64,000 nucleotides of DNA from Anthoceros angustus (Eukaryota > Plantae > Anthocerotophyta). The first letter of the stretch is position 1. Every line of letters starts with the position of its first letter. Below the pieces are notes generated by a model. That model did not search any database, was not told the DNA's origin, and saw only the letters and a program-made list of their open reading frames with translations. The stretch lies in assembly GCA_010909165.1 (NCBI GenBank), contig MU008216.1:62001-126000 (forward strand), in the 5' to 3' direction. Positions 42,601 through 64,000 of this stretch are shown here, piece by piece. Both the position numbers and the translations under genes were made by a program.

Positions 42601-42960
42601 TCCTCTTTGATGCTGATGATATTATTCTTTTCTCACATACCCCGAAGGGCTTGCAAAAGCAACTCCATGTTTTATCTAACTTTTGCAAAGCCAAGGGTCT
42701 CTTTGTCAATGTGTGCAAGACCAAGATCATGCGGTTCAAGTCATGGAATTACAAGGTAGAGTGCAAATCATGATGCTCAAGAGATGGAGATGGTCCACTC
42801 TTATATGTATCTCGGTGTCGCTATTTTTGGCCCCAAGTTCAACCAGACCTATTATGCCTCTTCTTGCGCTACTAAAGTGATGAGCTCTGTTTGTGCTTTA
42901 CACCATGCTTTCTACAAGATGAATATTCAGGATATCAACCTTTAGAAGCCGCTTTTAACA
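39341..42960 (+). mobile_element. Degenerate LINE, 5' part (ORF1 coiled-coil + RRM-like; ORF2 APE endonuclease + RT with an internal deletion)
   Basis: ORF1 fragments at 39906-40860 (AWRVGK...IVRF...VFVNPDLT). APE motifs SWNYNG (~40866), LSETH (~40956), G-LNA (~41317), STVDY (~41559). RT motifs VREGDPLFPNLFGLY (~42493), ADD (~42613), YMYLG (~42802). Confidence 0.88.
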
Positions 42961-44699
42961 ACGTCTATGTAGAAAGGGGTTTCTCCTGAAACCTCTTTTT
43001 GCACACGGACGTGGCGGACCCTTTTTTGCACTTGAAAAAATCCGCACTTTAATCAGCCTTTTTGGTATTTCTCTACAGACATGTCACCCGCAACATTTTG
43101 AATAATTGTTTTGATACACGTTATTTGAGATTGTAGATCGCAAGTACGTGGCAAAAACCTAAAGTCCCATTCTCGTTCGGCTTTTTCTTTCAAATTGGAC
43201 ATACTGCATGAAACTTATGCTTACATCTAAATGGTCTCAACACCGTATACACGTGTACGACGATACAAAGCGTTTAGAGTTTTTAGGGCTTGTTGCAGTG
43301 CAGTGCGCAAACTTGTTTGCGCACTTCATTCATACCAATCAATCCTAAGACTATACTCTCGCTTTGGGAATTTTACAGGACTGGGTTTTTTAGACATTGG
43401 GACAATAATATCTTCGTTGACCTGATGCTCTTGATCCGCGTGCAGTGCGAGAATGAGAGTGACATGCTCTACACTTGGAGCTGGGCCCACGCCAAACATC
43501 TCAAGATTCTAAAGATGCAAAAGGTTCTCACTACTAGTTCAAAGTTTTAACCACTAGAAAAAAGATGAGGGCTAAGTAAAGATAAGAACATATCTACGTT
43601 AGGGAGGTGCACAAAAAAGGTTGAAAACGTCGAAAGGAACCCTTTAAAATAAAATATATATATAAAAATACCAAAAAAATCACAAAAATATCAACATTTT
43701 AGGGCAAGTGTGCGCACTTGCCTCAAAGAATTTTAATATTTTTTAGGATTTTTTTGGGATTTTTTAGATTTTTTGCTCCTTTTTTCTTTGGATGAACCGT
43801 CTGTGAATGTACTAAGAGGCATGAACCATATGGGTTCATGCTCCTAGAACCTTCTTGACCTTGGGTGCATGCATTTGTGCGCGCACTTGGGCCCCTTGCC
43901 CCCTGATGCATGCACTTGTTCACAAAGCTGGGCCCCCCTGGCATGTTTGATGATAACCCGGTACTAGGTCACCGTCGAAAGAGACGGAAACACCGTAAAG
44001 GATAAAAAGGGGATTATAGGGTATTCTTCGTTGCATTAGGGTAGGATAGATATATGAGAGCGGTGTAGGTGTACCTCCGCCGATGTCTGCTACTTGTTAT
44101 TTTGTCGGGAGTTCTGGGGCACTAGCATGGTTTGGTGATACACTTTAGTACCATGTGGCTTGGGACACTTGGTTACTTTGCAAAGAATAGAGAGATGTGA
44201 GAGGGTGACTTTAAGTTTTCAGTAAAATAATATTTCACTATATTTTAGTTTCACTTTTATATACTTTTACGTTTGCTATTATTTACTTTAACTTACTTTA
44301 CTTTTACTTCAGATCTCTGTTTTTATCCGGTGGTAAGTCAACCCGCCGCTTACCCCAATTTCGACCTTACGCGTGGGCGCACTCTCTATTGCCATCCGGG
44401 CTCGGTGTTGAGTTGATCCTTCGCCACGAGCGGCTGGATGCAATCTCCTGCACTTGCTCGCCCACATCCGGCCGACAGTCGCACACACTCCGCGGGCTCA
44501 GAAGTTCGCGTGCTCGAGCTCTGGTTGTTGTAATCAACCCTTTGTGCTGCATTGTGAGCTATGTGGGGCTTCTTATAGGAGCCCTCCCTTCCCTTCTGTG
44601 CAGAACGCGGGCTCCCCACATGCAAGATCGAGCTGCGGCGGCTGGAATCAGCAGTTTTGTTTGTGCAGTTTTGAAGGTAATGTGCCTTGTGTGTGGCAA

Positions 44700-46320
44700 T
44701 CAGTGTTTTGCGGCTTCTGAGGCTTGCTTTACGCTCTTGTGTGCACATGTGCGAGTGCAGGGCTGTGAGATCTTTGTCGCGTGAGGTCTTGGCCTTGGAG
44801 TGGGTGCGTGCGGCTTCTCATTGTCTGTGGTGTCATCAAGAACTTGAGCCGGCTTAACGGTCTTGTGTGGACATGTGCATGCTCTAGGTCTTTGGGCGTG
44901 TGAGGGTGCTCCGATGGGTGCCAGTGCAGCTCCTTTGATCATTCCTTGTGTTCAATGTCACGGTGAAGGACTTGAGCACAGTAATGCTCTTGTGTGCACA
45001 TGTGCGAGTGCAGGGCTGTGAGATGTTGTGCGTGAGGGTGCTGGCCTTGGAGTGGGTGCCGGCGGCTCCTTGTCTATGGTGTCCTCGAAGAACTTGAGCC
45101 GGCTTAATGCAAATGTGTGCACATGTCTGCGGCTCAGCGTGTCTTTGGGCGTGTGAGGTGCTCTAGTGGGTGCAGTGCGGCTCATCATTCCTTGTGTGCA
45201 ATGTTACGGTGAAGGACTTGAGCTGAATAATGCTCTTGTGTGCACATGTGCAGTGCTAGGCTTGTGAGGTGGTGGCATTGTGATTTTGTTGGAGTGGGTG
45301 CCGATGTGCGGCTTCTCCTTGTGTCGATCTTGAGTGAAGAACTTGAGCACGCTGCGGTCTTGTGTGCACATGTGCGAGGTTACAGGTGGTCTTTGGGCGT
45401 GTGAGGTCTTGGCCTTGGAGTGGGTGCCGAGGTGCGGCTTCTCGATCACTCTGTGTGTGTCAGTGAAGAACTTGAGGCTTAATGCAAATGTGTGTGTGGC
45501 AATCGTGTTTTGCGAGGCTTGCTACGCTCTTGTGTGCACATGTGCGAGTGCAGGGCTGTGAGATCTTTGTGCGGCGTGAGGTCTTGGCCTTGGAGTGGGT
45601 GCAGTGCGGCTTCTCATTGTCTGTGGTGTCATCAAGAACTTGAGCACGGTCTTGTGTGGACATGTGCATGCTCTAGTGAGGTCTTTGGGCGTGTGAGGGT
45701 GCTCCGATGGGTGAGGTGCGGCTCCTTTGATCATTCCTTGTGTTCAATGTCACGGTGAAGGACTTGAGCGAGTAATGCTCTTGTGTGCACATGTGCGGGA
45801 TCGGGGCGTGAGATGTTGTGCGTGAGGTCTTGGCCTTGGAGTGGGTGTGCGGCTTCTCCTTGTCTATGGTGTCCAGAAGAACTTGAGCCGGCTTAACGGT
45901 CTTGTGTGGACATGTCAGCTCAGGGGGCGTGAGGTCTTGGGGCGTGTGAGGGTGCTCTAGTGGGTGCCGAGGTGCGGCTCCTTTGATCATTCCTTGTGTG
46001 CAATGTTACATGAAGGACTTGAGCTGAATAATGCTCTTGTGTGCACATGTGCACAGTGCTAGGCTTGTGAGGTGGTGGCATTGTGATTTTGTTGGAGTGG
46101 GTGCCGATGTCGCTTCTCCTTGTGTCTTGATGTGAGTGAAGAACTTGAGCACGCTGCGGTCTTGTGTGCACATGTCTGCGGGTTGGAGGTCTTTGGGCGT
46201 GTGAGGGTGCTGGCCTTGGAGTGGGTGCCGAGGTGCGGCTTCTCATTGTCTGTGGTGTCAAGAACTTGAGCGGCTTAATGCAAATGTGTGCACATTTGCA
46301 GGTATCTGGAGTGGGTGCTG
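44700..46320. repeat. Mosaic satellite built from shuffled modules (~125/250-bp periodicity)
   Basis: Recurrent modules GCTCTTGTGTGCACATGTGC, GGCCTTGGAGTGGGTG, CGGCTTCTC, AAGAACTTGAGC and GTCTTTGGGCGTGTGAGG. Confidence 0.92.
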
Positions 46321-46343: not shown

Positions 46344-47039
46344 ATGGCTTCCTCTGATGAGGAGGAGACATTAGGCATCTCAAGGAATCAAAAGCGTGCC
46401 CTCAAAAACATGTTGAGCCGCTCACAGCGTGTGAGTCGAGCCTTGGAGGCAATGCCAAAGTGGAAGCGTTCCGCCTGGTCTTGGCATGAAGGAGACTACA
46501 ACTTGCGGGTGGAAGGAGTGGATGTTCGCCAAAGCAAGTTGCAGCAAGGTTTGAGGGAGGCAGTGGGCGGCCAGGACGTGCTTACCCTCTGGTTTGGGGT
46601 AACTGGAACAGGTAATGATGCTTATGGGTGGAAGGGATCGGATAAGTCGGACAAGGAGTGGAGAAACATCGGCGACTTGGTTTTCAAGATATAAAGCGAG
46701 TTAGTCTTGGGGCGGAAGATCCCTAGGTTGATGGCCATTGGCATCCTTGTTGAGAAAAAGCTGCACAGGTCTGTCAGTTGGCTGGCCTATGCACAGAAAA
46801 CTAATGAGGTAAAGGCCTCCAAGCACAAGAAATGTGAGGACATGGAGAAGGATAAGAAAGTGCACAAGGAGAAGGAGACCCCTGGATCACATGGCCCTAT
46901 GACGAGGTCACAGAGCAAGGGGAAGGGCAAGAAGGCTGTGTTGGGGCCAGTGTCCTCGGACTCTCGAGGACCAGTGATGAGGTTAGCAGTGGCCGTGGAG
47001 AGCAAGACCAAAGGAGGACTTGCATGCACGGGAGCGTGA
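46344..47039 (+). pseudogene. Transposon cargo ORF of unknown function, one in-frame stop (46692-46694)
   Basis: ORFs 46164-46694 and 46707-47039 share a frame and read as globular protein (MASSDEEE...GTGNDAYGW...VSWLAYAQKTN) followed by a Lys-rich tail. Confidence 0.55.
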
Positions 47040-47663
47040 GCAAGAATGTAATACCGAAGAGGAGGTTGATGTCATAGCTGCGGCTGAGGAGGACGGAAAC
47101 CATGCAGGTCCCGAAGCGGAGGATGTAGAAACGGAGACAGGTGCAATGTCAGGTGGGTTTTTCTTATAGTTTTAGATTCCCTGCGGTTTGTTCCCTGGTT
47201 TTCGCATCCATCACGTTTAACAGGTTTTGAGCTTGATTTATGTGAGCTTGCTCTTATTGATTGCATAGAGGGAGCAACAAGCTTGACAAGTTCTTTGCTG
47301 GTCTTGACTTAGCCTCAGTCTTGTAAAGTTCACTTACAAGCTTGCTAAGCGTATCTTTGTTTGTGTGAGCTTGGTGTTTTCGTGGATTCGAGATAGACTC
47401 TTGCGGTAGCTCAATTGTGAGGATTCTTCACGGAGGGAGGGAGGAGAGGGGCCTCATGGGCATTCCGACATCTATCCGTGCGGTTTGGCGGGGGGCCACT
47501 GGGCACATCAACACCTAGTGGTGTCTTGTCATGTCATGTTCGCATGTAGTGTGCTTGTCATGTCGTCATCCTTATGCGTCCGTCATGCATGGCGGGTGGT
47601 GATACGGTGGCGTCTTAGTGTGGGCGGTTTCTTGATCGTCGTGTATTCACGCGGTGGAAGTGA

Positions 47664-47938
47664 CATTTGTTCATCTTGTCATGTCACGTTACGTAAGCAT
47701 TTGTTCATCATCTCATCGTGTCACGTTGTGCACTGTGGGCATTTGTTCATCATCGTGTCACGTTGTACTGTAGGCATCTGCTTGTCATCATCTCACGTTG
47801 TGCACACTGGGCAATTGTTCATCTTGTCATCATGTCACTTTGTGCACTTGTGGGCATTTGTTCATCTGTCATCATGTCACGTTGTGCACTGGGCATTTGT
47901 TCATCATCATCATGTCACGTTGTGCACTGTGGGCATTT
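47664..47938. repeat. ~36-41-bp minisatellite x7
   Basis: Unit CATTTGTTCATC...TGTCACGTTGTGCACTGTGGG. Confidence 0.9.
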
Positions 47939-49779
47939 CTCCGCCGTCATGTTGTCATGGACATCTTAATGCTGATGCCATTGTTATTATGTGACATTGT
48001 GGACACATGTGCAGCTATTCATGCTGGCATTCTGTCACATTTTTGGACCTGTGGGCACTTTCTCATCTTGTCTTCTTGGGTGGCATGGTGGACATGTTAG
48101 CATTTCCTCAAGTTGTCGTGTGCACACTTGTTTTCGTGTGTAGGCTGGGATACGCTAGAGTTGCACACAAAGATCAAAACGCAACTGGTGGAAGACCTCA
48201 TCTCCTTGTCGAAGCAAGAGACCAGGCTGTCGGTGATTGCAAGCGAGGAGACAAGCAACCTTGCAGCAGCAAAAATTGCTCTAGGGAGCTCACAGCGCGC
48301 CCTTGGCGCAATCTGCTATAACAAGGAGGTGCGGTTATGTGGAGCGTCATCAACTTCATACTCACAGGCACCTAATTATGTCGTCCTTTGCGGTAGAAGA
48401 TGCACATGTTGCTCGTGTCCGTGTGCGTGCAACGGAGGCGGCGGACAATCGAGAGCCAACAACAAAAGCGTGACGCCCTCAGCACGTGTCAGCGGAGGAT
48501 TTACATGATGCCTTTGGCCGCATACATAGCTTGACGCTCAAGAAAGAAAGGACTCCTCAATGGATTCCAGCCCTTCTTACACTAGCGAATGTAGCCCTCC
48601 GGATCACGAAGTCTGCGTGTGCACAGTACTTCGTATATGCATGCCTTGTTTTGTGTCGAGATCTATTCCATGCATCTAAGCGCAATTGGTTTTGTGGTGC
48701 TATGTAGGGATTCGGATGCTATGACTTTGTTTTCCTCCCTTGTGGGCCTTTTTTCACGATGTATGCCTCTACCAACATGTCGGTCGGGTGACTGCCCCAA
48801 TCCTTGTTCTCTTCAAGTCCCCCGTGGTTGCAGGCCAAGGGTTGGCCATTCACTAGTGGAGTCCAACGGATGCACAGGAGCGTGACCCGAGCGAGTGGAC
48901 GAGCATTATCATGGTACTGCAGAATTCCACATCATGGAGCACCGTTTGGAAGAATTGTTGGGGGCGGTCGCAGATAGTGCCCTGGTGACTCACATAAGAA
49001 GGCGGTTCATGAGTCTCACAGTTAGTAGTGCTCTAAGGTTGTTGCTTTGCATGGAAAAGCTATATGGACCTTTGTGCTAGCAATTCGCTTGTCCCTAGGC
49101 ACATATAGTAGGCTGCCTGTCCTCGCTTGGCGGTGCGGCGTTGATCACACCACCACGTGGGCGGCCACCTATCCCAAAGCGATTCATTGCCCTGTTGGCC
49201 AATGCACAACTATGTCATGGAATCGCGGATCTGGTGGTCCCTGTGTCTCAAACCAGATTGAGTCCTGGTGAGGCACGCACTACAGTGCAATGTGGCCGCG
49301 TGTTGGCCCACTCATGTGGCGATCCAGTGATGTCATGTTTGGGGTTGGCTCCTTTGGTTGATGCAGATGCCTCTCACGTGGCGACTTCTTTGTTTTCAGC
49401 CCCGATTTTGATTCCACTCCATGGGTGGGTCAGTTGGTGGTGTGCCACAAGGTGGGCACCCATGTGTGGCCGTCGGTGAAGGAGGATACCGGTTTTTCTA
49501 CAGAGGATACCCGAGGATACCGTGCGGTGGACACCCACCTTGTGCATGATGATGAAACTAGGCATCAAGAATGACACACGGCTTGTGCGCAGACACGCAA
49601 CACTGTAGAACTTGTGCCGTCGTGTGGAAGTGACCACGGATGCAAGAAGATGAGGTGGAGGTGCCCGGCAAGGATGGGGAGGGCGTGACCACTATGGCGG
49701 TGGCTTTGCAGTGGTATGGATGTGGCCACTTGTCTTTGGTGTTCCAATGGCCGATTCTCTGCGGTGAAGCGGCCACTAT

Positions 49780-50271
49780 GTGTCGAGCCACCATGAAGTG
49801 GCTATTGTCATTCATAAGGATGCGGAGAAATCGCCACTTCAAGCATGCTACGAAGTGGTGGAGGTATCTGGTGGACGACGTCAGTCTTTGCGTAGAAAAG
49901 GCAAGCCGGAGCAGACTCCAGGAACTTTGAAACGGAAGGGTGCCTCCAAGTCCGGGAGACCAGGGCGTCCCAAGAAAGCTTCACAAAGTGCCATGGTGGA
50001 ACAACCGGCAGGTTTGGAATTTGGTGCAGCGTCCCCATGTGCAGGAGATAACTTCATGGTGCGTTCGAGGCCTGGTAATAAAGAGAAAGTCCTCTGGTAT
50101 GTATTGCGTTGCACAGAGCCCATGGTCACATTAGCTGTGCAAACTGAAGATCCAGCGTGGGGTGGTGAGATTTTTGCAGCAGGTGAAAAGGTTGTGAAAG
50201 GTTACTACTATGAGCGGTGCCCTCGACAAAGTGCCTACCGACTCGGATTCGAGCCACGTGGTGACCCATAA
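49780..50271 (+). pseudogene. Cargo gene fragment with a basic NLS/AT-hook-like stretch and a domain homologous to the transposase C-terminus
   Basis: KRKG...GRPGRPKK followed by GDNFMV...WYVLRCT...W...FAAGEKVVKGYYY, matching GDNFLV...FYLLTCT...W...FQAGEEVVVGQYY at 58370-58535 (-). Confidence 0.7.
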
Positions 50272-50479
50272 TGCTTGAGGCATCGACCACAAAGTTTCCA
50301 ATGGTAGCTATTCCGGGGCCAATGAGAAGAACAAGAACACTCCGACTTTGGCTCTCTGCTGGATATAGAACATGGTTGGATCAAGTTGTGGCGACATAGC
50401 GTAAAGGGAGGGGTCCTGCAAAATATACATGGGCTTGCTTTGTTCTTAGTCCACAGTGGTCACTTTTTGTCAAGGGTTG

Positions 50480-51030
50480 TAGACATGTGTAGGATGCTGT
50501 GGATGGACAGTATTAATGTGCAAGCATCCATAATTGGCATAGATGTGAATCCTTGCACTTTTGACAATCATGTTACTTGTGGGAGAATGCACTGGTTTTG
50601 TGGGTCCTGTGAAGCAATTCTCCGTTTGTAGTTCTTAGCGTTGGGAGGAAGCTACCGGTTGTAATTGCTCAATTACGAGCAAACCCGGACTTCGCGAGAA
50701 AGAGGGCCTCGGATGGTCTCTGAAACAATGCCTCGAGTCGATCCGTTCAATGCTCGTGGCGGACACATATACAATTCCAATGACACGATTAGTTTAATGA
50801 CACACGGCCATGTAGACATTTTGTGATGAACACACAACAAAGGCGGGCTCTGCAGAACCAGCTTTAACATGAAACCAAAGATCCAAAATATGCCACACCA
50901 CCGATTTCACATGCCACCCTCGTGGCCCAAAGTATGTAATGTACAATGCCACAAAACAAGCATCAAGGGATGCCTCCGCCATCCACCCATTGTCACACAA
51001 CCTATCTAGTGTCGTGGATGTGCGAGCCAG
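50480..51030 (-). pseudogene. Probable Ulp1/C48 SUMO-protease relic
   Basis: Ordered but frameshifted motifs: L..L...GWMAEASLDACFVAL (WLND..ID-like), HWNCICV, IERIDS and PQ...DC. Confidence 0.45.
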
Positions 51031-52725
51031 CCCGACGGAAGGAACTTGTTGCCCGACCTCGGGTGGCGCCCTCAATCTATCATCGCCATGATGTCCTCCT
51101 CGCTTGAGTCCCCGCGGCATGCGGATCGGTGCCTTCGCCGTCAACCCGACCACCTCCATGATGTGCGGCGTGCTGGCGGCGGTGGAAGGCACAGCATACA
51201 CACGATCTCGGACCTTCTTCCGATGGCTTGCGTGCCTTGGCGTTCCATTCGATGCAAGTAGTGTGCGCCAAGGTGACTAGTGACTTTCATCATTGACAAA
51301 TGGTGATACTCACCTCCGCCAAGAGGGTGCCACAGGCCAGCTTGCCTAATCCGGCTTGAAGATTCCATGTCCCTCCCCACACCAACCACTCCTCCCAAGT
51401 GCATGCTTCCATTGCATACAAGAGCGAAGTCCGCAACGTCGATCTCCACAAAGGACAAAGGCGGGCTAGCTTGCGTGGTCTCTGAGTGCTTGCCGGCTTT
51501 AAATTGCCAATGCCAGGAGGCCACTCGTGTGCATAAGGCCCGAAGGGTGGGTGACATGATTACTTTCGCTGAAACATGCCCAAGTGTAAGGAAAGCAAGG
51601 CCTGGATGGCCAATCACTGGCGATAGATTTTGAAAATTCGACCTCGATCCTTTCAACAGCTTGTCGAACCCGGCATAGGGGACCAAAGATTTGAGGCCAA
51701 CGTGACCAAGAGTCCGACATGACAAAGAGTGCATGGAGTCTGCTTTGTTTGCAATGATTGAAAATGGGAAAACTAGGGCCATTTACCCGGAGATAAAGAA
51801 TTTCACAAGCCGTGAGCAGTAGCGCGAAGCAATGTCTCAAACACATCCACAAAGTTCTTAACGCCGGCTTCATGCTTGCTATAGCCCACTACAACTTCTC
51901 GCAAGTTGCGGCTCTTCAAGGACAACACATGAACTTGAAACCACGGGGTATCGCCCACCACCGCTGGCGTCCTCTTTCGTGTTTTCAAACCTATTTGTTA
52001 TTGTGCCGTTAGAACCTTCAACATGTGGACAATCAACCTCTTGCTGGTCGGGGTTGCGCCAAGTCACCAGCCTCCCGAGTCATAAATGATTGTCTCAGTT
52101 TAGGTGATGCGCACCAATGTTTGAATTTTGTCCAGAACTCCTTTTGCACCTTGAACTCAAGCTAGTAACCTTGAATGTCATGCTCCAACTTGAATTTGCA
52201 CATAGGCGCAGTGCGGCTTATGCGTCCACGACACCCACCTCGGCTCTCGCTGCTCGGATCCTGCACCGGCGAGCCTTTCAGCAAATTCTAACGTGCCTTC
52301 ATTAGCATTCCTACACCCAATAGATACCCCAACTCCCAAGTCGGATCGGCTTTGAAAGATCCAAAGGATACAAGCTTGACATTCCAACCGGAGCGGAATC
52401 ACAACATGCAGCCCGTGCGGCCTTACAGAACCCATTGCGTTATCCTCATCAAGCACAAGCGTCATGATGAATCAAAGCATCCTCCTCACATTCAGCGTCT
52501 TGAGGGGCGGAAGGTGAGTAGACACTTCTGGCGGTCGCGGGCGCCTCCCTCCAACTCCCAGTTTGGTTTGCCATGGACCCTCCACGCCGGCCCCGGTGTG
52601 AATGAAGAGTCCCCCGTGCAACACCGCACTAACAACGCCGCACGCACTAACACTGTCCCGTCAAAATAAGCCGGTAAGAAGGATTGTGAGAAAGCGGCAC
52701 GTCTCGGGAGTAACCTAACAAGCGG

Positions 52726-52994
52726 CCCACATCACCACATCCCCACATCACCACATCCCCATCCCCACATCCCACATCCCCATCACATCCCACATCCCAC
52801 ATCCCCACATCCCCATCCCCATCCTCCCCACATCCCCACATCCCCACATCCCCACATCCCACATCCCACATCATCCCACATCATCCCACATCCCCACATC
52901 CCCCCATCATCCCCACATCCCACATCCCACATCCCCATCATCCCCACATCATCCCCACATCCCCACATACCCACATACCACATACCCACATACC
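52726..52994. repeat. (CCCCACAT/CCCACAT)n simple repeat
   Basis: About 270 bp of 7-8-mer units, grading to CCCACATAC at the right end. Confidence 0.95.
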
Positions 52995-53049
52995 CTGAGT
53001 TTTATCAAACTTGAGCTCCCACTCCCGACCGCATCTATTAGGGGCGAAG

Positions 53050-53596
53050 CAGGATATCGACAAAGCAGCGTTATAGCACGAATTTGGGTCACAAGTCTTG
53101 AGCCAAAAACATTTTGTAAGCGGTACCTGCAAAACTGTCTAGTGTGACAACATAGTCTAGTAAACTCAGAAGCAGGTGACAACATAGTGTGACAACATAG
53201 CGGCCCGGAGCAATGTGAAAATAGAAACCTGGGGCACGACACTTGCATTAATTCGTTGTCCTCCTCGCGATGCAGTGTTCATCCAATCGGGTTGTGCTCA
53301 TCTCAAGGCTGAGAATGAACATGATCTATCGAGAACAGCGAGATATTAGCAAAAGCAGCGCGTTATAGCACGAATTTGGGTCACAAGTCTTGAGCCAAAA
53401 ACATTTTGTGAAGCAGTGCCTGACCTTGCAAAGCTATAGTGTGACAACATAGTGTAGTAAACTCGGCGAAGCAGTGACAACATAGTAGATCGATACGCGG
53501 CCGAACAATGTGAAAATAGCAACCGGGCACGGCGGCTTGCATTAATTCGTTCTCCGCGATGCAGTGTTGATCGAATCGGGTTGTGCTCATCTCAAG
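53050..53596. repeat. ~292-bp tandem duplication with indels
   Basis: GCGTTATAGCACGAATTTGGGTCACAAGTCTTGAGCCAAAAACATTTTGT at about 53068 and 53360; both copies end AATCGGGTTGTGCTCATCTCAAG. Confidence 0.9.
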
Positions 53597-54256
53597 ACCA
53601 CCAGTTGATCATGAACCACGAACTGACTTCCACCGGTAGTACTCACCTTCCTCGGTTGCTTTCATAGACATAGGCGGTGACTTGTTCACAGGCTTGTGGT
53701 TAGCCTATATGGACTTCTCCATCGTGCCCATGTGGTGCCATTGTGAGCTTGCATGTCGAACAATTTGAGGGTGAAAATAGCATTCCTCCGGATCAGCCAA
53801 AGCTATACACAGACTGGGCAGACTGTGGCGCGACTTTCGCGATGCCCGGAGCGCGACAATCCGTGTCGTTGTAGGAAGAAGTCCGTTCCCAAGGAATGAT
53901 AGGCTCCGTTTGCGTTTGGTGATTCCTACCGCTTGCGCTCGTTCGGCCTCAACGCACATACTCTAACTACTCTAGCGTTCCGTCTGCCGGTATGGCCAAG
54001 CGTTTGAGACCCGTTCGCGTCGTATCGTTCATTAATCACTCACACATCATCCTTTCCTCTCTCCCCTCACGCTACACTCCTCGGTCTTAGAAAAAGCGGG
54101 TTACAGTCGGACCTCCTCCGTCGTTCGCCTCTCCGTCCGACTCTGCCGCCCTCCGGAGTTCCTCCGGCTCACCGTTCGATCCGTTCGGTCTTTGGGCGGC
54201 TCGGGCGAGCACGGGTCACCGATCACCTTCCACTGCACACACCACAACACGTTAGG

Positions 54257-57200
54257 TGTCACGGGACCACAGTCAATCTCCCGGGTGCCGTGCACCTTTC
54301 GGTGACTCGGGACTCACGTTAGCAAGAAGACACACAAAGGTGCAGAGCGGCATCAACACCAAGAAGATGATTTATTGGGGCCTTAGCCCTCTTATACTCG
54401 CCGAAGGTCGGCCTTTATTACACCTCTATTACGGTGAGGGCCATTTCGGGGTGCCTAACCAGCCGCCTACTACCCTATTCCGCCTATCGCCGTCGGTGGT
54501 GGGGGTGGGATAGCCCCTCATTCCTTCTTGGCACCGGCCCAAAGCGAGCCACTGCGGCGCCTGTCGGATGATCGCGGACCCCTTCCTCTTCAGTGCAGCC
54601 GAGGCGCCACGGCGCGGCGACAGCGGCGATCACCACCAAGTCTTCCTCGTCCTCCCTCTTCTCTCTCGGGCCCTGCGCGTGGGCCCTCAAGGGTTGGATC
54701 TGCTGGGGTTGGTGGTGTGGCTCTCCCCACTCCCAGTTTGGACCTCGGGACCTGTCTGACTCGGTCCGGACCTCTAGGTCAGTCTTCCCTCTGAGTCCGG
54801 TCTCACTGGGCCGGCCTTCTTTAGTCAGGTCCTCGGGGCCGGGGCCTGAGGTCCGGTCTTGGACCCAACCCCACAGGGTCGGACCTCGGGGTCGGACTCG
54901 TCACTGAGTCTGGATCCCTAAGTCGGACTTCCTTGAGGCGGACCTCGGGATCGGCCTTTCCTCAGTCCGGACAAAGTCAGGACCCTCGACTCTGGGCATG
55001 CCTCCTCGCCGGGCTCACGGGTTCATCCTGAGCCCTCCCTTGGTTCCCGAATGCCCGGTTGCACCTTTCCTTCCTCTCAAGATCCTCCTCGTCCTTCCAT
55101 GCGAGGTCTTCTTACCTCGGTGTGGCGCCTTCCTCCTCCCGGTTCCTCCAGCTGCTCTCCCGCGCTGCTGCTGCCGTCGTCAAGCAGGCTCCTAGGACTC
55201 CAGCGGTTGTCTTGTCCCGGGTCCGTCCTCTCGCTCCTCCTTCCATCCCGGAGTCCACCCTCACCTGGGGTGGCGCGGGACCTCGAGCCTTGAGGGCTCT
55301 GCGTGGTAGTAAGGCGGTCGGAATCGACTTGAATCGCCTCCTCTACATGAGCCGGGCACCGTACTCCCTCCTCAGGTGCTCGTGGCCCAGGATCGCCCAC
55401 TGCTTGGCTTTGTCTCGTGGCCAAGCTTACGGTAGGCGGACTCCCTTGAGGCCGTCAAGGCTGCCTCAGTTACCTCTTGCAACCTTGCTGCTCGGCGTTC
55501 TCCTCCTCCGTCGTTGTTCCGGCTCAGCCATTTGCGGGCCATGGGTGAGCTCCTTGCTTCCTGGCCGGACGAGCAAGCTGTACCTTTCCTCCGTGCTTTC
55601 CTCCCTTCTCTATTCTTTCCGGAGGTCCTCCACTTCCTTCTCCAGGCGGTATCCCGTCAGGCTCACGGCTTCCGCCACATCCTGCTGCAACCTTGCGGCG
55701 TCGAACTCCTTGCACGCCGCTTTATTCTCCTCCGTCTTCAAGCGGGCTGGGCGTTCCACCTCTCGCTCGAAGTCTTGGATTCTCGTTGAGAACCTGCTGC
55801 TCCGATGCATCTTGGGTTGCAACTCCAAAGTGTCCTGTTGTCCTCCGGCTCCTGCGCCCCCTTCTACCTCCTGCGTGCACAGGGTCCCCAATCTCCCGGG
55901 TCTGGCCTCAGCCTCCTCACGGCTCGGCCGTGCTTGCTCCATGACCACTTGCTCGGCCTTGATTGGCGGCTCTCGGCCGCCTCCTCCACGGTTCGATCAC
56001 GCATAGTGATCGCGATCGGCCCGTGGCCTCCGCCTCCTTGGCCACCTTCACGAGCCTCTCGGCTTGGCTCTGGTCGTCAGGCTGCCTCGCGAGATCCGCG
56101 CCCGTTCGCTTGGGCGTCCTCGCTTCTGCTGCGCTCGCCCCTCTGCTGCGGAGGTCCTCCCGCGCTTGGGCCTCCTTGGCTGCCCGGTATTCCTCGGTGA
56201 AGGAATTTAGTCCGGTCCTTGCGGATGGACGGACCTCCCTCTCCGCCTCCGGCGTTTTCCTTCCTCAATCCTGCCCGAGCTTGGCCTTCCTTCTCGCCTC
56301 ACTGGGCTCCCTCCAGCTCACGGAGGCACCATGCGCCTCGGGTGGCTTCCACCTCCAGGCCTTCTCGGCCATCCCAGACCCCGGCATACCGTCCATGGCG
56401 GTGGCAGGACCGCCGTGTTTCCTCCACGGCCTGAGTGAGGCTCCCACAAAGTCCGTGCGGGGCCGGCATCTCCAGTCCGTCAAGGACCTCCATACCGCAT
56501 CCGGAGCAAGTCGGGGGGGTTCTCGGACAATCGGGACCCTTGGGTCACGAGTCTTTGGCTCGGGCTTCCCCTCCTTGGCCCTTTTGGCGAGCTCCTTCTC
56601 GCCCTTTTCCTCCACAGGGCTCGGCGGAGGTGATGGAGTCAGGAGCCGCCCTTTGCCCCTTCACATCGGCGGGGCGGCTCTGGATCTGCTGCCGGTGTCC
56701 TCCTGCTCACAGGCGGCGTCCTTCGCCCTCCTTCTTTCCTTCCTCGCTTCTTGCCACTCGTCGGCGGGGAAGAAATCTTGCACCAGGGGTGCAGCGTTGG
56801 TAATAGTGGTCTTGCGTTTCTTGGCTCTCTCACAGTCGGCGGGGCTCCTCGGTAGGAGTGATGGCCGGTGGCTGCAGGGTCACTTCTCTTGGTGCACGGT
56901 TGGGGCACGGAAGGAGGGAGGCGGGGTGCTTCCATACTTCCACAGGTGGTGAGGGGTCCGTTCACGTATGGAGTCAGGAATCCTCGATCGTCCTCCTCCA
57001 GTCCGTTTGGTTTTCGGCCGGCCTCCTCCCTCGGCGCCCTTGCCGCTCCACTTCCGGGGCCTCAGTCCTTTCGGGCGCTCGCTCAAGCTCTCCTTCCTTG
57101 AGGAGTTGAAATGCCCCATACATGGATCGGGTATGGGGCGGCCAGAATGGCGAGGCTTCTCGCTCTGAGCTTGCGAGCCTCACAGCTAAAGGCGAAGATA

Positions 57201-58352
57201 ATCCTTCCCAGTCCGCCCTCTTCCCAGCTGCGTAGCGTGCGGGAACACCAATAGATTATCACCAAGGTGATCCACCTTGGTAGTAGGTTCGATGGGCGAT
57301 GATCCGGGCCACCACGACTCGGCCATCCAGCAGGTCGGATATCGACCAACCGTTGGTGGTCGTTGCGTCGAGCCTTAGCATCGGCTGCTGGCCTATCTTC
57401 CCTTCGCCTTGAGGGGCTCGGCACCCTCCCCTCTTCCTCCTTGGGGCGGTTGTAGGCCGCCTTGACCTCAAGGTCCATCGCCTTGGGTCCTCTCGGAGGT
57501 TCTTGGACCGCACCTCCTTGTTGTGCCTTGACATCTTCCGGGCAAACTCCCGGACGGAGTGACCTCAAATGTCGGACCATTTGGAACACGTCCAAATGCC
57601 ACTCCTGCACCAATTCTCCGCTTCACGGGCGAGCCCAAAGTCCGGATAGCGCGGGTCACAATGTTGCGCTCCACAAGGTTCCATGGCTCCCAAACTTCCG
57701 GGCTTTTGGGTGCCATCGCCTTCTTCTCCCTTGGTTCTTGGCCGCTTGGGAGGCTGGCAGCACGTTGCGCCTTCTTCGCGCGTTGCGCTCCGAGCCTCAG
57801 CGGTGAGCAGCGGCGTCGAGTGTCCACGAGATACCGAGCGGTTGCGGGCGCAAGATCGCGAGGTCTCGGTGCCTTGACAGCTTCTTCGCGACCACGCCGA
57901 GTAATGCCGGGCGGGCGCCTCTTCCTGTCCGTGGCGAGTGCATGGCTTACTGCGGCCTCTGGCCAGCGCTACGGCCTTACTCCGCGTACTGCGGCCCCTC
58001 GCGCGCGCGGCCGCGGGCGTGAATACACCCTGCGGCCTGCAGGGTTACAGTCTGACCAGCTGCATGCCGTCCTCCACTCGGGGTCGTCCGTGGCGTCGCC
58101 TGGTCGTCCACGGCCCAACTTCTAAGTTACTTTCCTGGCGTACTGCACGGTCACAGGTGGGTCGGACTTGCACTTATGGCGCCTACCATAGTAGGTCAGA
58201 TGCGTTCCTCACTCCGGTCGGAGTATACTCGAGTGCCGTCCGAGTGCTGCTCCATCTTATTTCCCCTTTTCCGCCTCATTTTATCCTTCACTCCTACAAA
58301 AAAACAAAACCCTACCTATTTTCTAACCCCCAAGGGAAGTCCGTAGTCCACA
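54257..58352 (-). mobile_element. Nested gypsy (Tat-like) 3' fragment: LTR-like end, PPT-like GGGGCTA, tandem 3'-UTR motifs, broken coiled-coil ORF
   Basis: TGTCACGGG at 54257 and TAGCCCCTCA (minus strand TGAGGGGCTA) at 54511. GGACCTCGGG/GTCGGAC repeats at 54740-54990. Minus-strand E/R/A-rich fragments (QDFEREVER...LEKEVEDLRKE). GC-rich block ending abruptly at the transposase C-terminus. Confidence 0.55.
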
Positions 58353-61300
58353 CAAATGCTTTTCCAACATATAGTATTGTCCAACAACCACCTCCTCCCC
58401 AGCCTGGAATTCTCTTTTACTCCAAGGGCAATACCGAGACTCCAATAACGTGTGCTTAGCCTTAGTGCAAGTCAACAGGTAAAAATCCAGCCCTTCATCT
58501 GCAGGGTCTGCCAAGACAAGGAAGTTATCTCCAACTTCCAAGATATCTGCCATCTCTGAGACATCAACAACATCATCATCCTCAGCTGCTTCAATTGTTG
58601 GAAGTGCATGATCAGCAATCATCAGTGCAGGGACTTGCTGGTCAACCGCTTGTCGTGTTTGTCTGGGGCCAGCAGCCTGTCCATGAGGTGTGATTCGCAC
58701 TAACCTCCAAAAGCCAGCATGAGGCACCATTTCACACGCTGAATGGTTGCTCTCCATACACTCTGCACAGAAACATGCAAGGCTCCGCATTCGCAATTGC
58801 GTGGGGTCATGCATGTCACAACCATACAGGCTGTGCATTTGCTTGGATCCAGGTATGGGGTCACAACCAAATTTGTTTCGGCGGTTTACCTCTGTCTTTC
58901 CAATGAGCCAAAAACTTCGGTGAACTGCATGATCAGCACTTGCATAAGAGCTGGCTGCACCAGCAGAGATGTTTTGCAGGTACTCCACCACATCTGCAGC
59001 ATTTTCCATCCTGCCAGCAGTAGGGGACGACTCTGCAGCTCGCAGAGCACGCTTCAAGATGGCACCTGCACCATCGTGCTCCCCCTTCCCGTGCCCACTT
59101 CCAAAATAAGACCAAAGCATGTTGCACCCACCTGTGATGCTAGGATACCGAGCAATGAAGTAGCTAGGCGACACGCTTTGAATTGGCTAGCCCCATCGAC
59201 CCGGCACCGGTGTTCTCGAGGTTGAGGAATCCGCATCCTGCATCCCACTTGCTTTTTGTAAGCATGTTGCACAAATAGAGTGTCATGGACCATGTCATCG
59301 CTAATATAAAAGTGATAGTACTTCTCAATTGATGCGCGGTCCTCTGCATCAACGGCCATTTGTAAAAACCAACACCAAAATAGTAACACAGTCGTTACGC
59401 GATTGCATGGATTGAATCTCATTCTGGACCCCAAATGCGTAGTTCTGAGCAAAATCGATCACTGAAACCACAACATCCTGTGGGAACCATTCGAGACAAT
59501 GTCTGAACTCTATCCCCTGCCACCGCTGGATGTAATCATGAAACAGAAACTCCTTCAGCCTTACCTTCAGATACTCCACAAACACGGAAGGATGTGTTTC
59601 CCTAAACACTAGTTTGATCCTTTTCTTGTCGTTGCCATCAGCCTCCTTTCCGACTACCTGATATTGAAAACAGCGCCACTTAAGAACATCATTTGCCTGA
59701 ATATCCAAACATGTCTCTGAAGGGCAGAAGGGAAGTGTGTTGACACCACACCTGTCACATGTTCCTAGCAAGCATGCGGGGAATGCGGGCAGCATCCTCA
59801 CCCTTTGCACAAAGAACACGCTCACATAGTGTCTGGTGAAGCCAAACAAGTGGAGGCGTTACAATGAAGCTCTTGAGCCAAAGGATGAGCACACACGGCA
59901 AGAACAACATGCCACGGGTGAACCACAGGCTGCCCGGAGGTTATTGAAGGCATCTTTAAGGAACGCCATTTCCACATGGTGCAAGCGGTGATTGCGCTCT
60001 TGCAAGCTCTTAACAAAGAACGGCTTCAACTTCTCGAATGACCGTTGCCCAACTTGTATTTCCGGGTGTTCTTGACAGAAGCGAAGGTAGAACTCTGTCT
60101 GCACATGTCATAGAAGAACACACTAATCAGCCTAAGAAACCCTGTTGGTAAAAGCAACGCCAAACCCACAATGGAGGCCACATGGAGTCGCCAGATCATA
60201 TGTGTGCATAGGACATTGGGGTCAAGCATGCAAGCTTGGGTCCCAGCTGACGTAACCACGAAGCAAAACAATAGCACAAACATGTAACACACTCAGTTCC
60301 AGCTGTCTCTGTTTGGCAGCATAGCAAGGTCACCACTTAGTTGCCCAACAAGAAGTCACCCTACGGTTGTATGAGGAAGGGAAACACAAGCAGGTTAGAA
60401 GGACCCAAGACACGTCCTTCAGATCAGCAACAACCTTCACACAAATCTCGAAACCTAGCAAGCCAAACTTCCACATTACGTCCTTGAGAAGAACAACAGC
60501 CTACAATCAACACTTCAAACTCAGCAAGTCAGACTTCCACACATACCTGTGACATGTCCAGAAAGTGCGTGATATGTTTGATGAACGTTTTCGGTGCTAT
60601 TCGCAACCGCTTGGTATCTTTTGTGTTGGATGAAGGACGGGAAGCTGATTCCCAAAAGTGGACGATGGTGGCCTTAACATGTGGCGAAAGGATGTCAGAT
60701 CTTGATCTCCTTCCATCACCCAACGGATCATCACGAGGCATGCCCTCCCGCCTTGTGCTTAGGGCTCGATGGATCGCCTCCTGCGACTCCAATGTGGTGG
60801 GAAAGCGTAGCAACAAGGTGATTGTCTTGGAGATCTTGAGATAAAATGACGTTGAGCAGGTGTTCCTTGCTGCAAATGGTCTCCAACTTGAAGCGCCTTC
60901 AAGTTTGTGCAAGCCTCACGCACATTCTTCAACAACAATGCTCCTAGTTGGATCTCTTTTGCATCCTTTGTAGCCCTTGGCCTATACAACTTGAGAAGTG
61001 GTAGGTGACTAAACACCTCCAAAATGTCTCTCGACATTCTGCTGTATATCGGTGGTAAGGCATAAAAGCGATTGGCTAGTGTCGAGCCACTTCTTGCTTG
61101 CGCCGAGCATTCCCTAATACGGTGGCTGCAGAGCCCTGCCGCTCTCTATGCTTCACGCATGTTGATGTTTTGGCCCTCTCCTTCAACTCTACGGAAGGAG
61201 CATCCTCCCCTACTCCTTGGCCTGGAGGACGTGTCTCCTCGTTTAACATGCTCTGTCCACCTCCAAGATGTATCCCTACCCTTCTTCCTCCACACCACGG

Positions 61301-61560
61301 ACACGACTTCACGTGAAGCACCTTGGTATTAGTGCTTCCACTTTGACGACGCGTTTGGGCTGCGCCCATCGACTCCGTTGTTGGGAAGGTGGCCGAACCA
61401 TAACACCGTCCCAAAACAAGAGTTTGAAGGCACCACCTCCAACGCCACGGCACTATCCACCGTATTTGAAGCAACACACCGCCCCGCACTATCCACCAAC
61501 CCGGTAGCGGACCTACTTGCAACTTGTAGCGCCGTCCGAACTGATCTCCTTCCACCATTC
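58353..61560 (-). pseudogene. Sola-like DDD (RNase H-fold) transposase with introns and frameshifts
   Basis: VSVIDFAQNY (~59440-59470), YISDDMVHD (~59285-59310), DGASQFK (~59178-59198), YFGSGHGKGEHDGAGAILKR (~59050-59110). Cys clusters CLLGTCDRCG and LACFCAEC. GT-AG intron at about 60099-60546. The C-terminus is cut by the LTR fragment and the 5' boundary is approximate. Confidence 0.8.
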
Positions 61561-62439
61561 ACATGTAGCCACGGAGCTTGTCACGATTACCTAGCCTCTG
61601 AGTTCAAGTTGAGTTCTATCTGATACCTAGGTCATTTGCGGCTAGCGGTATGCGTACTCCGATCCGCTTGCACCACATAATGATATTCAACCTAAACCAT
61701 AAATGATTTTTAAACTCGAGCATTTGAAGGCGGTAGCGTGGGCGGGCCCGTTCCCTGGCCACGGGTTCGTGAAATGAAGCGGCAAAAGGCCAGCTATGTG
61801 GGAACATTGTCCTTAAACAAGTTGAATTTTTTAAGCATATTTTAATATACCATTATTTATTAAATTTTAATCCTAGATAAAAATAGACATTACCATAACA
61901 TTTAAAAAAAATCAGACAAGTTGGAAAAGAAATGAATTTTTCAAAATTGTAGACATTGCGTGAGGACAAAATAAGAGCGTTTCAACCGTTTCTAACTAAA
62001 GTGAGCACCTAACCATGCACGCACCCTCGACACATCCTCGGACCTCCAAAAGGACATGTTTCCCCATTAGAAGATCATTTTTCGCATTCTTTTTGCAGTG
62101 CATGCACAAGTTTGCGCATAAGCGTTATTTAGGCGCACACTTATGCGCGCTAGGCCCCTGGTATACAAAACATACAAAACCACGCAAAATGCGAAACTAC
62201 GGACATGGCGAAATTATGGAACAATGAGGTCATTGACCCTTCATCACAACTAAATCGCCATGAACACAGTACAAGGCGCCACGGCGTGTAAATGACTCGA
62301 TAGGAAGTGGTCGGATGAGAATGCCGAAACGATGGATGAACACCTACAAAACCAACAAAACCAAACCAACTTTAGTTTCCGGCGAAATAGGGTTGGGATT
62401 TTTCCCAAACCCTTTTGATGGGAGAAACCCCTTTCTACA

Positions 62440-63480
62440 CGTATTTTTCTCCACGTTGTTATTCCCTCTTGCCTTGTATGGTATTTGGGTTTGAATCTCT
62501 CCCCATCCTCTTGGGGAAAAGGTTCAAGCTTCCTTTATTCGAGCTCACATCACTGTAAGTGCTCGACCCGCTTACCTAGCCTCCTTTACGAATTTGCCGC
62601 CTTTCACCTTGAACTTGAAAGCCTTTTTGCCTGCCCTCTTTCCTCTACCGCCTTTAGCTTCTTGACATTGTCAACCCCGATCTTTCCCCTTACCACCTCC
62701 TTCCCTGCAGGTCTTTCCGTTCGCTTTGGCTCAATACTGATTCCCAGGCTTCCTTTTGTTGGCTCTCTCAAGCTGCCGATTGGTTGAAAAGGCTCGAGTT
62801 TGAAACTTTAAGACTCCCAGCTTGGCCTACTCCCTACTCCCAGCTTGCCCTCTCTCATATCCCCTCAACCACCACATCCGAAGGGACCTTAAATTGAGAT
62901 ACCTTCGTCTCATCCGGTCTCCTCTCTATTCTATCCCTCCTCTCACACCCGGACTACGGTTATACAAGGAGGAGTTTCGTGTCAATCCCCTTTGGTTTTC
63001 TTGCCACCTTGCATCTTAGATCTCCTCTCTTCAAACTCCGTACACTCATTGGTCAGTGCATTAGCTCCCATCACCTCCGGATCGAAACTAAGCTAGTTCG
63101 GGCGCCTCCTTAAGAAAACGGATTTCTGAGCTTTGCTCCTTGGACCACGAATATGAATCACATTTTCTCTTCTATTGTCCGCCTATCTTTGATATTCGAG
63201 CTCATTACACTCTTCTTTTCGAGTGTCTTTGGTTTTCCTCATGTAGATTTTTCTTTTCACATTTTAAACTTTACGGACTCTCTCTAAGCTTTTGAACATC
63301 GACATGCTTTGTTGAACTTGTTATTGGTTTCACTTCCTTTTTTTTCCTTTTTCATCTCAAGCGATTCTTGTCTTTCTAGTTCAAACATACGTATGAATAC
63401 TCGATTTTTTCCCTCTTTCACGTTGTACTATCCCTGTCCTGTGATGGCCCTTTCATCTTTAGCGGATGTAAATAAAATTG
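62440..63480 (+). mobile_element. Degenerate LINE, 3' part (continuation of 39341-42960)
   Basis: FSTLLFPLALYG..W (post-RT motif), SHHLRIET (~63065) and a degenerate E.HFLF.C knuckle (~63155). 3' UTR ends TGTGATGGCC...GTAAATAAAATT. Confidence 0.82.
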
Positions 63481-63496
63481 TTTGTAAATAAACTTG

Positions 63497-64000
63497 GACG
63501 ACGTTTGGCTGCTGCCCATCGACTCCGTTGTTGGGAAGGTGACCGAACCATAGCACCGTCCCAAAAACAGCCAACAGTTTGAAGGCACCACCTCCAACGC
63601 CACGGCACTATCCACCGTATTTGAAGCAACACACCGCCCCGTGACTATCCACCAACCTGGGCATGGACCTACTTGCAACTTGTAGCGCCCGTCAACTGAT
63701 CCGCTCCTTCCACCATGTCACGCACATGTAGCCACAGAGCTTGTCACGATTAATGCCTAGCCTCGAGTTCAAGTTGAGTTCTGATTACCTAGGTCATTTG
63801 CCGGCTGGCGGTATGCACGCCCAGTCTCCGCTTGCACCTGTAAATGATATTCAACCCTAAACCATAAATCCGACCAGGATTTTTAAACCCGTAGCATTTC
63901 GAAGGCAGCGCGTGGGCGGGCCCGTTCCTTGGCCACGGGTTCGTGAAATGAAGCGGCAAAAGGCCAGCTATGTGGGGACATTGTCCTTAAACAAGTTGGA
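63497..64000 (+). repeat. Indel-rich duplicate of 61345-61826 (offset ~2152 bp), running off the window
   Basis: GCCCATCGACTCCGTTGTTGGGAAGGTG...GGCCACGGGTTCGTGAAATGAAGCGGCAAAAGGCCAGCTATGTGGG is collinear in both places. Confidence 0.92.

Follow-up and report, generated by a model that had tools for sequence, protein, structure and literature searches.

A Predicted BAH-like C-Terminal Module of Sola-like Transposases Is Encoded Twice, as Convergent Half-Copies, in a Decayed Giant Element of Anthoceros angustus

Introduction

Chromodomains are carried by the integrases of Gypsy/MAGGY retrotransposons, and a 4-bp target-site duplication is a feature of the Sola superfamily of transposons. Here we analyze a stretch of 64,000 nucleotides from Anthoceros angustus (Anthocerotophyta; assembly GCA_010909165.1, contig MU008216.1, forward-strand positions 62,001–126,000; hereafter the window, numbered from its first letter), in which a 19.5-kb element bounded by terminal inverted repeats (TIRs) encodes the same peptide on both strands, once at the end of its own transposase (the − copy) and once in an opposing open reading frame (ORF) (the + copy). 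The peptide belongs to an unannotated module that forms the C-terminus of an entire group of plant transposases, a family seen in liverworts and in Klebsormidium.

A giant multi-gene Sola element, Sola1-1_Ec32, has been described in Ectocarpus (PMC12477816). The element studied here resembles giant Sola-type elements in being TIR-bounded and well over 10 kb long, in having its transposase near one end and without a Pfam family, and in holding extra material with ORFs on the opposite strand; unlike the published accessory gene, which encodes a ParB-methyltransferase (PMC12477816), the ORF considered here carries a copy of the transposase tail. We refer to the family as Sola-like, a putative label that rests on a language-model link to DUF7869 and not on comparison with a Sola profile; Pfam has no Sola profile (PMC5751038).

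Fusions of Chromo and PHD domains to DNA transposases have been surveyed (bioRxiv 10.1101/2021.11.30.470311), and the part of that survey consulted gives Chromo and PHD fusions and none that joins BAH to a transposase. Like the chromatin-reader domains of other mobile elements, the module is a small, predicted beta-barrel of reader type at the C-terminal end of an integrating enzyme, and by analogy its likely role would be chromatin tethering and the choice of the insertion site.

Results and Discussion

Homology of the Two Copies

The ORF at 49780–50271 on the plus strand and the last transposase ORF on the minus strand (58323–59174) share 23 identical residues out of 57 (40%; BLASTP, 41.2 bits, E = 2e-9). 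When each was used as a tblastn query against the whole window, the sole match was the other copy (E = 1e-6 and 3e-7), and a tblastn search of the window with every transposase piece and the + ORF revealed no second common stretch. The shared peptide extends from GDNF at 50044 to YYY at about 50211 on the plus strand and from GDNF at 58532 to YY at 58371 on the minus strand, so that the original prediction, which was made from the letters alone and had one peptide encoded on opposite strands, was correct in its coordinates.

A family profile built from unrelated members scores 70.8 bits with the − copy and 67.5 bits with the + copy (hmmsearch), which excludes a chance match; as judged by sequence comparison, the homology is real. 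At the DNA level, the copies are 50% identical across 55 aligned codons, with identities of 0.53, 0.64, and 0.35 at the first, second, and third codon positions, and similarity is gone in their flanks. This pattern indicates an old homology retained at the protein level, in line with the earlier suggestion of an old and selected duplication with protein likeness and without obvious DNA identity: what is duplicated is a real, old, and selected protein module common with the transposase. Both copies sit in one TIR-bounded unit, convergent and 8 kb apart, and the TIR pair at 42968–42986 and 62421–62439 is the sole such pair in the window.

The Module as the C-Terminal Part of a Transposase Family

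A word search with the transposase tail gave four relatives, whose contigs (L001 and L002) encode the peptide downstream of the catalytic part. A HMMER search with the four-row alignment of these sequences (A1) yielded 207 proteins at E ≤ 1e-3, and a second alignment (A2) comprises 83 rows; the module models have 128–151 positions. One match of the large search, P0143 (481 aa), with five matching stretches, turned out to be an Arg/Ala-rich tandem-repeat protein and no relative, and it was kept out of the alignments. The named sources of the module are Riccia sorocarpa, Riccia fluitans, and a transcript of Klebsormidium subtile; the other sequences come from metagenome, ENA, or Logan contigs.

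In long relatives (432–549 aa), the peptide lies at the extreme C-terminus, as it does in a 799-aa cluster member from Riccia sorocarpa. The order of elements is that of the core motifs DF.ENY, SDD..HD, WSDGC..QFK, and GHGKGEHDG, followed by a Cys-rich stretch, typically an acidic linker, and then the module; DF.ENY, SDD..HD, and GHGKGEHDG are the conserved acidic motifs of the core. The full module takes up about 125–135 aa (GDNFAV .. FY.L.C .. WG..F..G..VV.G.YY .. Y.L .. SHLV.A.KF.M .. Y.L..E, then a helix). Pfam scans of all window ORFs, of the relatives, and of the 83 module sequences gave no useful family, and none for either the module or the core. The sequences thus identify the module as a family-wide C-terminal part of Sola-like transposases.

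It should be noted that the domain of about 65 aa originally proposed stands as a shared stretch and not as a whole domain, being the front half of this module. On the family profile of 151 positions, the − copy covers positions 6–70 and the + copy positions 13–78, and neither extends into the SHLV..KF.M strands or the closing helix of the full-length module. A profile of the C-terminal half (about 50–55 positions) found no significant match in the six frames of the window (2361 pieces). A piece just after the stop of the + ORF may be a decayed second half of the + copy (Table 1); its match is weak, with E = 3.8 against the 2361 pieces and about 0.02 when the count is limited to the dozen or so immediately downstream, and joining it to the + copy with X at the break left the score unchanged. 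For the − copy, a second half was sought downstream in all frames, including read-through with X, and was not found. The GC-rich block that begins about 200 nt past the cut-off transposase tail may, because of this position, be a nested insertion that removed it.

The − copy follows the catalytic core and acidic linker of a same-strand transposase, as is the pattern in the family, and the motifs VIDFAQNY, YISDD..HD, and SGHGKGEHDG of this resident transposase line up with those of the relatives. The gene is interrupted by one in-frame stop and two frameshifts, its last ORF having 283 codons, and the element is dead as assembled. Since neither copy encodes the whole barrel, neither is likely to be functional here.

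Predicted Fold of the Module

The AlphaFold2 model of the module, calculated from the 83-row alignment, has a predicted local distance difference test score (pLDDT) of 94.8 and a predicted template-modelling (TM) score of 0.87, with seven strands and a C-terminal helix. In a Foldseek search against the PDB, BAH domains came first (polybromo, EBS, Rsc2, AIPP3, ORC1, and MET1), with probabilities mostly of 0.63–0.99, E-values of at least 0.02, and TM values of 0.34–0.41; the top two rows had probabilities of 0.98–0.99 and E-values of 0.02–0.12. A VIA search, which is independent of Foldseek, placed BAH domains in about 15 of its top 26 rows (78–95 residues aligned, Z = 5.3–7.3, where below Z = 8, according to the tool, the common arrangement alone may be shared), and Tudor, chromo, and SH3-type barrels ranked after them with 55–60 residues aligned. 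In the ESM Atlas, the shape of the module was matched with TM values of 0.76–0.80 by mollusc and haptophyte proteins, some of them with DUF7869, and with TM values of 0.51–0.53 by two clusters in which 91–97% of members belong to Pfam BAH.

Taken together, the models point with moderate confidence to a BAH-like fold, a beta-barrel closed by a helix. BAH domains (PF01426; Arabidopsis AIPP3 and EBS, ORC1, DNMT1/MET1/ZMET2, Rsc2, and PBRM1) thus rank first in both independent structure searches, and they share with the module the order of elements, with a first strand of the GD.V type followed by an aromatic-rich strand. Three points weigh against this assignment: none of the 83 module members was matched by Pfam BAH at E ≤ 10, the module profile gave only noise against PDB sequences, including solved BAH chains, and the likeness is one of fold alone, at Z below 8. 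The module therefore differs from BAH domains in having no sequence-level match to them and also in being joined to a transposase and not to a chromatin enzyme. Of the earlier guess of a Tudor-, SH3-, or BAH-like domain, the BAH-like variant stood at the level of models, while a match at the level of sequence did not appear.

In intact members of the family, the module would most likely tether the transposase to chromatin or to a chromatin-bound partner and thereby bias the landing site, as far as can be judged from the fold. If it does read chromatin, it would do for DNA transposons what the chromodomain does in steering some retrotransposons, and insertion-site choice by these elements would be directly testable. 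With the window element dead, the doubled peptide is in itself ordinary; the useful by-product is the module, a confidently modelled BAH-like domain with look-alike predicted folds in mollusc and haptophyte proteins.

The Module in Other Loci

The original prediction saw in the + ORF an accessory protein of a two-component transposition or anti-silencing system. We mapped both cores and modules in 62 outside loci, two from Riccia and 60 from metagenomes (about 650 kb in total), the metagenome scan being made with the 10 closer rows. In nearly all of them, the module lies immediately behind a core of the same strand; those of L033-35 and L040 lie at contig ends and are set aside here. Two apparent orphan modules, at L011/12 and L018, were ruled out as such by transposase debris (CFC..C..W motifs) just upstream, and a small protein of Riccia fluitans (P0150), considered as a stand-alone module gene, proved to be a mis-modelled transposase tail. 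A relaxed search (E ≤ 5) of the outside loci found no further module copies, and no accessory or other non-transposase gene with the module was found among the 62. In these loci, the module occurs as a transposase tail, be it intact or decayed, and never in a separate gene, which speaks against the accessory protein; that proposal is further weakened by the rest of the + ORF having no relatives and by both window copies being half-modules.

Tail-to-tail arrangements of two transposases do occur. At L014-16 (L014, 4688–8988), 570 bp separate the tails of two diverged transposase pseudogenes, which have a module each and are not similar in DNA, and L063/64 is a second case of diverged transposase pseudogenes in this arrangement. 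A convergent second tail is therefore not unusual debris for this family.

At another outside locus, L004 (Riccia sorocarpa, CM100794.1), about 8 kb of inserted DNA separates the two parts of a single transposase gene, which the annotation lists as R1sor_020376 and R1sor_020377; 9 kb downstream begins another transposase copy.

Origin of the Plus-Strand Copy

We regard the + copy as, on balance, the orphan tail exon of a second, long-diverged gene of transposase type in a decayed giant element, without present function. The − copy is the tail of the element's own, now broken, transposase; according to this proposal, the + copy would be the remaining tail exon of a second gene that ran convergently to the resident one in the same element.

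The proposal draws on the tail position of the module in the outside loci, on the tail-to-tail pairs found there, and on the start of the exon. In the relative L001, a phase-1 intron interrupts the Gly codon of GD (GAAG/gtatgc ... catacag/GTGAT, the slash marking the boundary), and an acceptor-like site lies at the same place in the + ORF, so that the exon of the + copy probably begins at 50044, at a conserved intron position. The preceding 88 codons, basic and AT-hook-like, would then probably be non-coding and may represent intron read-through. The + copy also lacks the short helix (L.DLL..) that is found before GD in relatives. The open frame by itself is weak evidence of coding, because ORFs of 160–213 codons occur elsewhere in the 5.7-kb stretch around the + ORF.

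The + copy keeps the conserved residues of the family as well as the − copy does. The codon-position identities, together with the open frame, suggest divergence under coding constraint rather than neutral decay. In a tree of 67 rows, its branch is long (1.23, against a median of 0.57); the tree as a whole, including the grouping of the two copies discussed below, is of little weight, since it rests on 75 columns and includes no further sequences from this genome.

Several observations weigh against the orphan tail exon. The frame is open for 88 codons upstream of the module, contains a good AT-hook core, and has a basic charge unlike that of any relative's linker: the 40 residues before the module carry a net charge of +6, where the outside relatives have a median of −4 and reach +3 at most (150 relatives, of which 58 have at least 30 residues upstream). 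No transposase core or debris was found upstream of the + copy on the same strand, either by tblastn with five outside transposases or with the C-terminal-half profile, and a SWIM finger sought upstream on the plus strand was not found either; a basic stretch stands in place of the core and acidic linker. Around the + ORF, neither a second TIR pair nor borders of a nested element emerged, the search giving only short repeats at the chance level. Finally, of the 67 rows, the − copy is the one that the + copy matches best (43% over 54 columns), and their grouping as a clade is not rejected (p-AU = 0.53). The alternative to an accessory protein that was named at the outset, the tail of a second nested transposase of the same family with TIR remnants of its own, is therefore borne out in its likeness to a tail exon and not in the TIRs or an upstream core.

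Two of these observations, the missing core and the basic upstream ORF, speak for a true accessory gene. Here, the + copy would be the last coding part of a gene that joins a DNA-binding or AT-hook part to a copy of the transposase tail module and runs convergently to the transposase; the common module would bring its product to the mark or partner that the transposase reaches on chromatin, where it would help, guide, or inhibit transposition. We consider such a gene doubtful. In its favor, the layout is convergent within one TIR pair, GRPGRPKK precedes the module in an open ORF of 163 codons with no transposase core upstream, the + half of the module is kept as well as the transposase's (67.5 versus 70.8 bits) and diverged under coding constraint, and giant Sola-1 elements with an opposite-strand accessory gene have been published (PMC12477816). 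Against this, a non-transposase gene with the module was found in 0 of the 62 outside loci, and neither the + ORF, for which a word search with all 163 residues found no relatives, nor the ORF at 46344–46691, which a word search likewise left without relatives and which has no Pfam match, finds support outside the window. Moreover, the module breaks off halfway, what follows being at best a frameshifted remnant of its other half, the helix before GD is missing while an acceptor-like site stands right at GD, and ORFs as long as this one arise by chance in the region. An extended form of the proposal, in which the + ORF ends a real accessory gene reusing the BAH-like tail, two proteins address the same mark or partner, one to cut and paste and the other to guide, shield, or repress, and the design recurs in several Sola-like families of this genome, appears unlikely.

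The + copy could also have arisen by an inverted duplication of the transposase tail within this very copy of the element, followed by neutral drift. The two copies are indeed mutual best matches, with a clade that the tree does not reject, and their ends fall at nearly the same point in the module. However, third codon positions are near random (0.35) with second positions at 0.64, the 163 codons contain no stop where several would be expected after neutral drift to an amino-acid difference of about 57%, the + copy retains conserved family residues as well as the − copy, and DNA similarity is gone from the flanks, which makes this origin highly improbable. A coincidental likeness of two aromatic-rich ORFs, for which only the shortness of 57 residues could speak, is refuted by the pairwise E-value and by the roughly 70 bits that both reach against a profile from other organisms' proteins, and it can practically be dismissed.

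Other Features of the Element

The features of the element are collected in Table 1. Unlike Sola-type transposons, the element shows no clean 4-bp target duplication: no matching 4-mer was seen in the flanks (..GTCTA, element, CGTAT..), which is weak evidence because the copy is old.

Table 1. Coordinates of the features of the element in the window.
Feature	Positions	Strand	Remarks
Left TIR, 19 nt	42968–42986	+	Sequence matched twice only in the window; chance expectation 0.02
ORF holding the + copy, 163 codons; first 88 codons basic	49780–50271	+	First 88 codons without relatives
AT-hook-like GRPGRPKK, possibly intronic	49954–49977	+	Read from sequence; no Pfam match
+ copy, first half of module (profile positions 13–78)	50038–50238	+	hmmsearch 67.5 bits; BLASTP to − copy E = 2e-9
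Acceptor-like cag/GA inside Gly codon of GD	50041–50046	+	tgtgcag/GAGAT; place and phase as in the L001 intron (by eye)
Possible decayed second half of + copy, KFPM at 50292–50303 at about the expected spacing	50265–50396	+	−1 frame, just after the + ORF stop
GC-rich block (62–63% GC) between the two copies	54000–58150		Begins ~200 nt past the end of the − copy; ORFs without Pfam family
Resident transposase pseudogene	58323–60912	−	60912–60529, 60104–59859, in-frame stop, 59849–59349, frameshift, 59452–59054, frameshift, 59174–58323
− copy, first half of module (profile positions 6–70), end of resident transposase	58365–58559	−	hmmsearch 70.8 bits
Right TIR, 19 nt	62421–62439	−	Perfect complement of the left TIR

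Upstream of the + ORF, one frame stays open over about 230 codons at 46344–47039 (+) except for one stop, beginning with MASSDEEE... and continuing into a Lys/Glu-rich part. The GC-rich block has long ORFs on both strands, including a Ser/Leu/Ala-rich ORF of 329 codons on the plus strand and a coiled-coil-looking ORF at 55610–55948 on the minus strand.

Both flanks of the element (42960–42990 and 62415–62450) have AACAACGT nearby. An inverted motif of 25 nt, with a GCGCAAACTTGT core and 80% complementarity, occurs at 43304–43328 and 62094–62118, that is, 336 and 321 nt inside the TIRs, and could be a subterminal transposase-binding site. A direct repeat of about 500 nt, 86% identical, is found at 61340–61824 inside the element and at 63492–63998 outside the right TIR and is probably another repeat family. 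The interior is filled with tandem arrays at 44688–46300, 47650–48080, 52726–53000, and 53062–53596, whose types are units of about 800 nt with shorter sub-periods, 40-nt units, a microsatellite of the CACATCCC type, and a 292-nt unit present twice.

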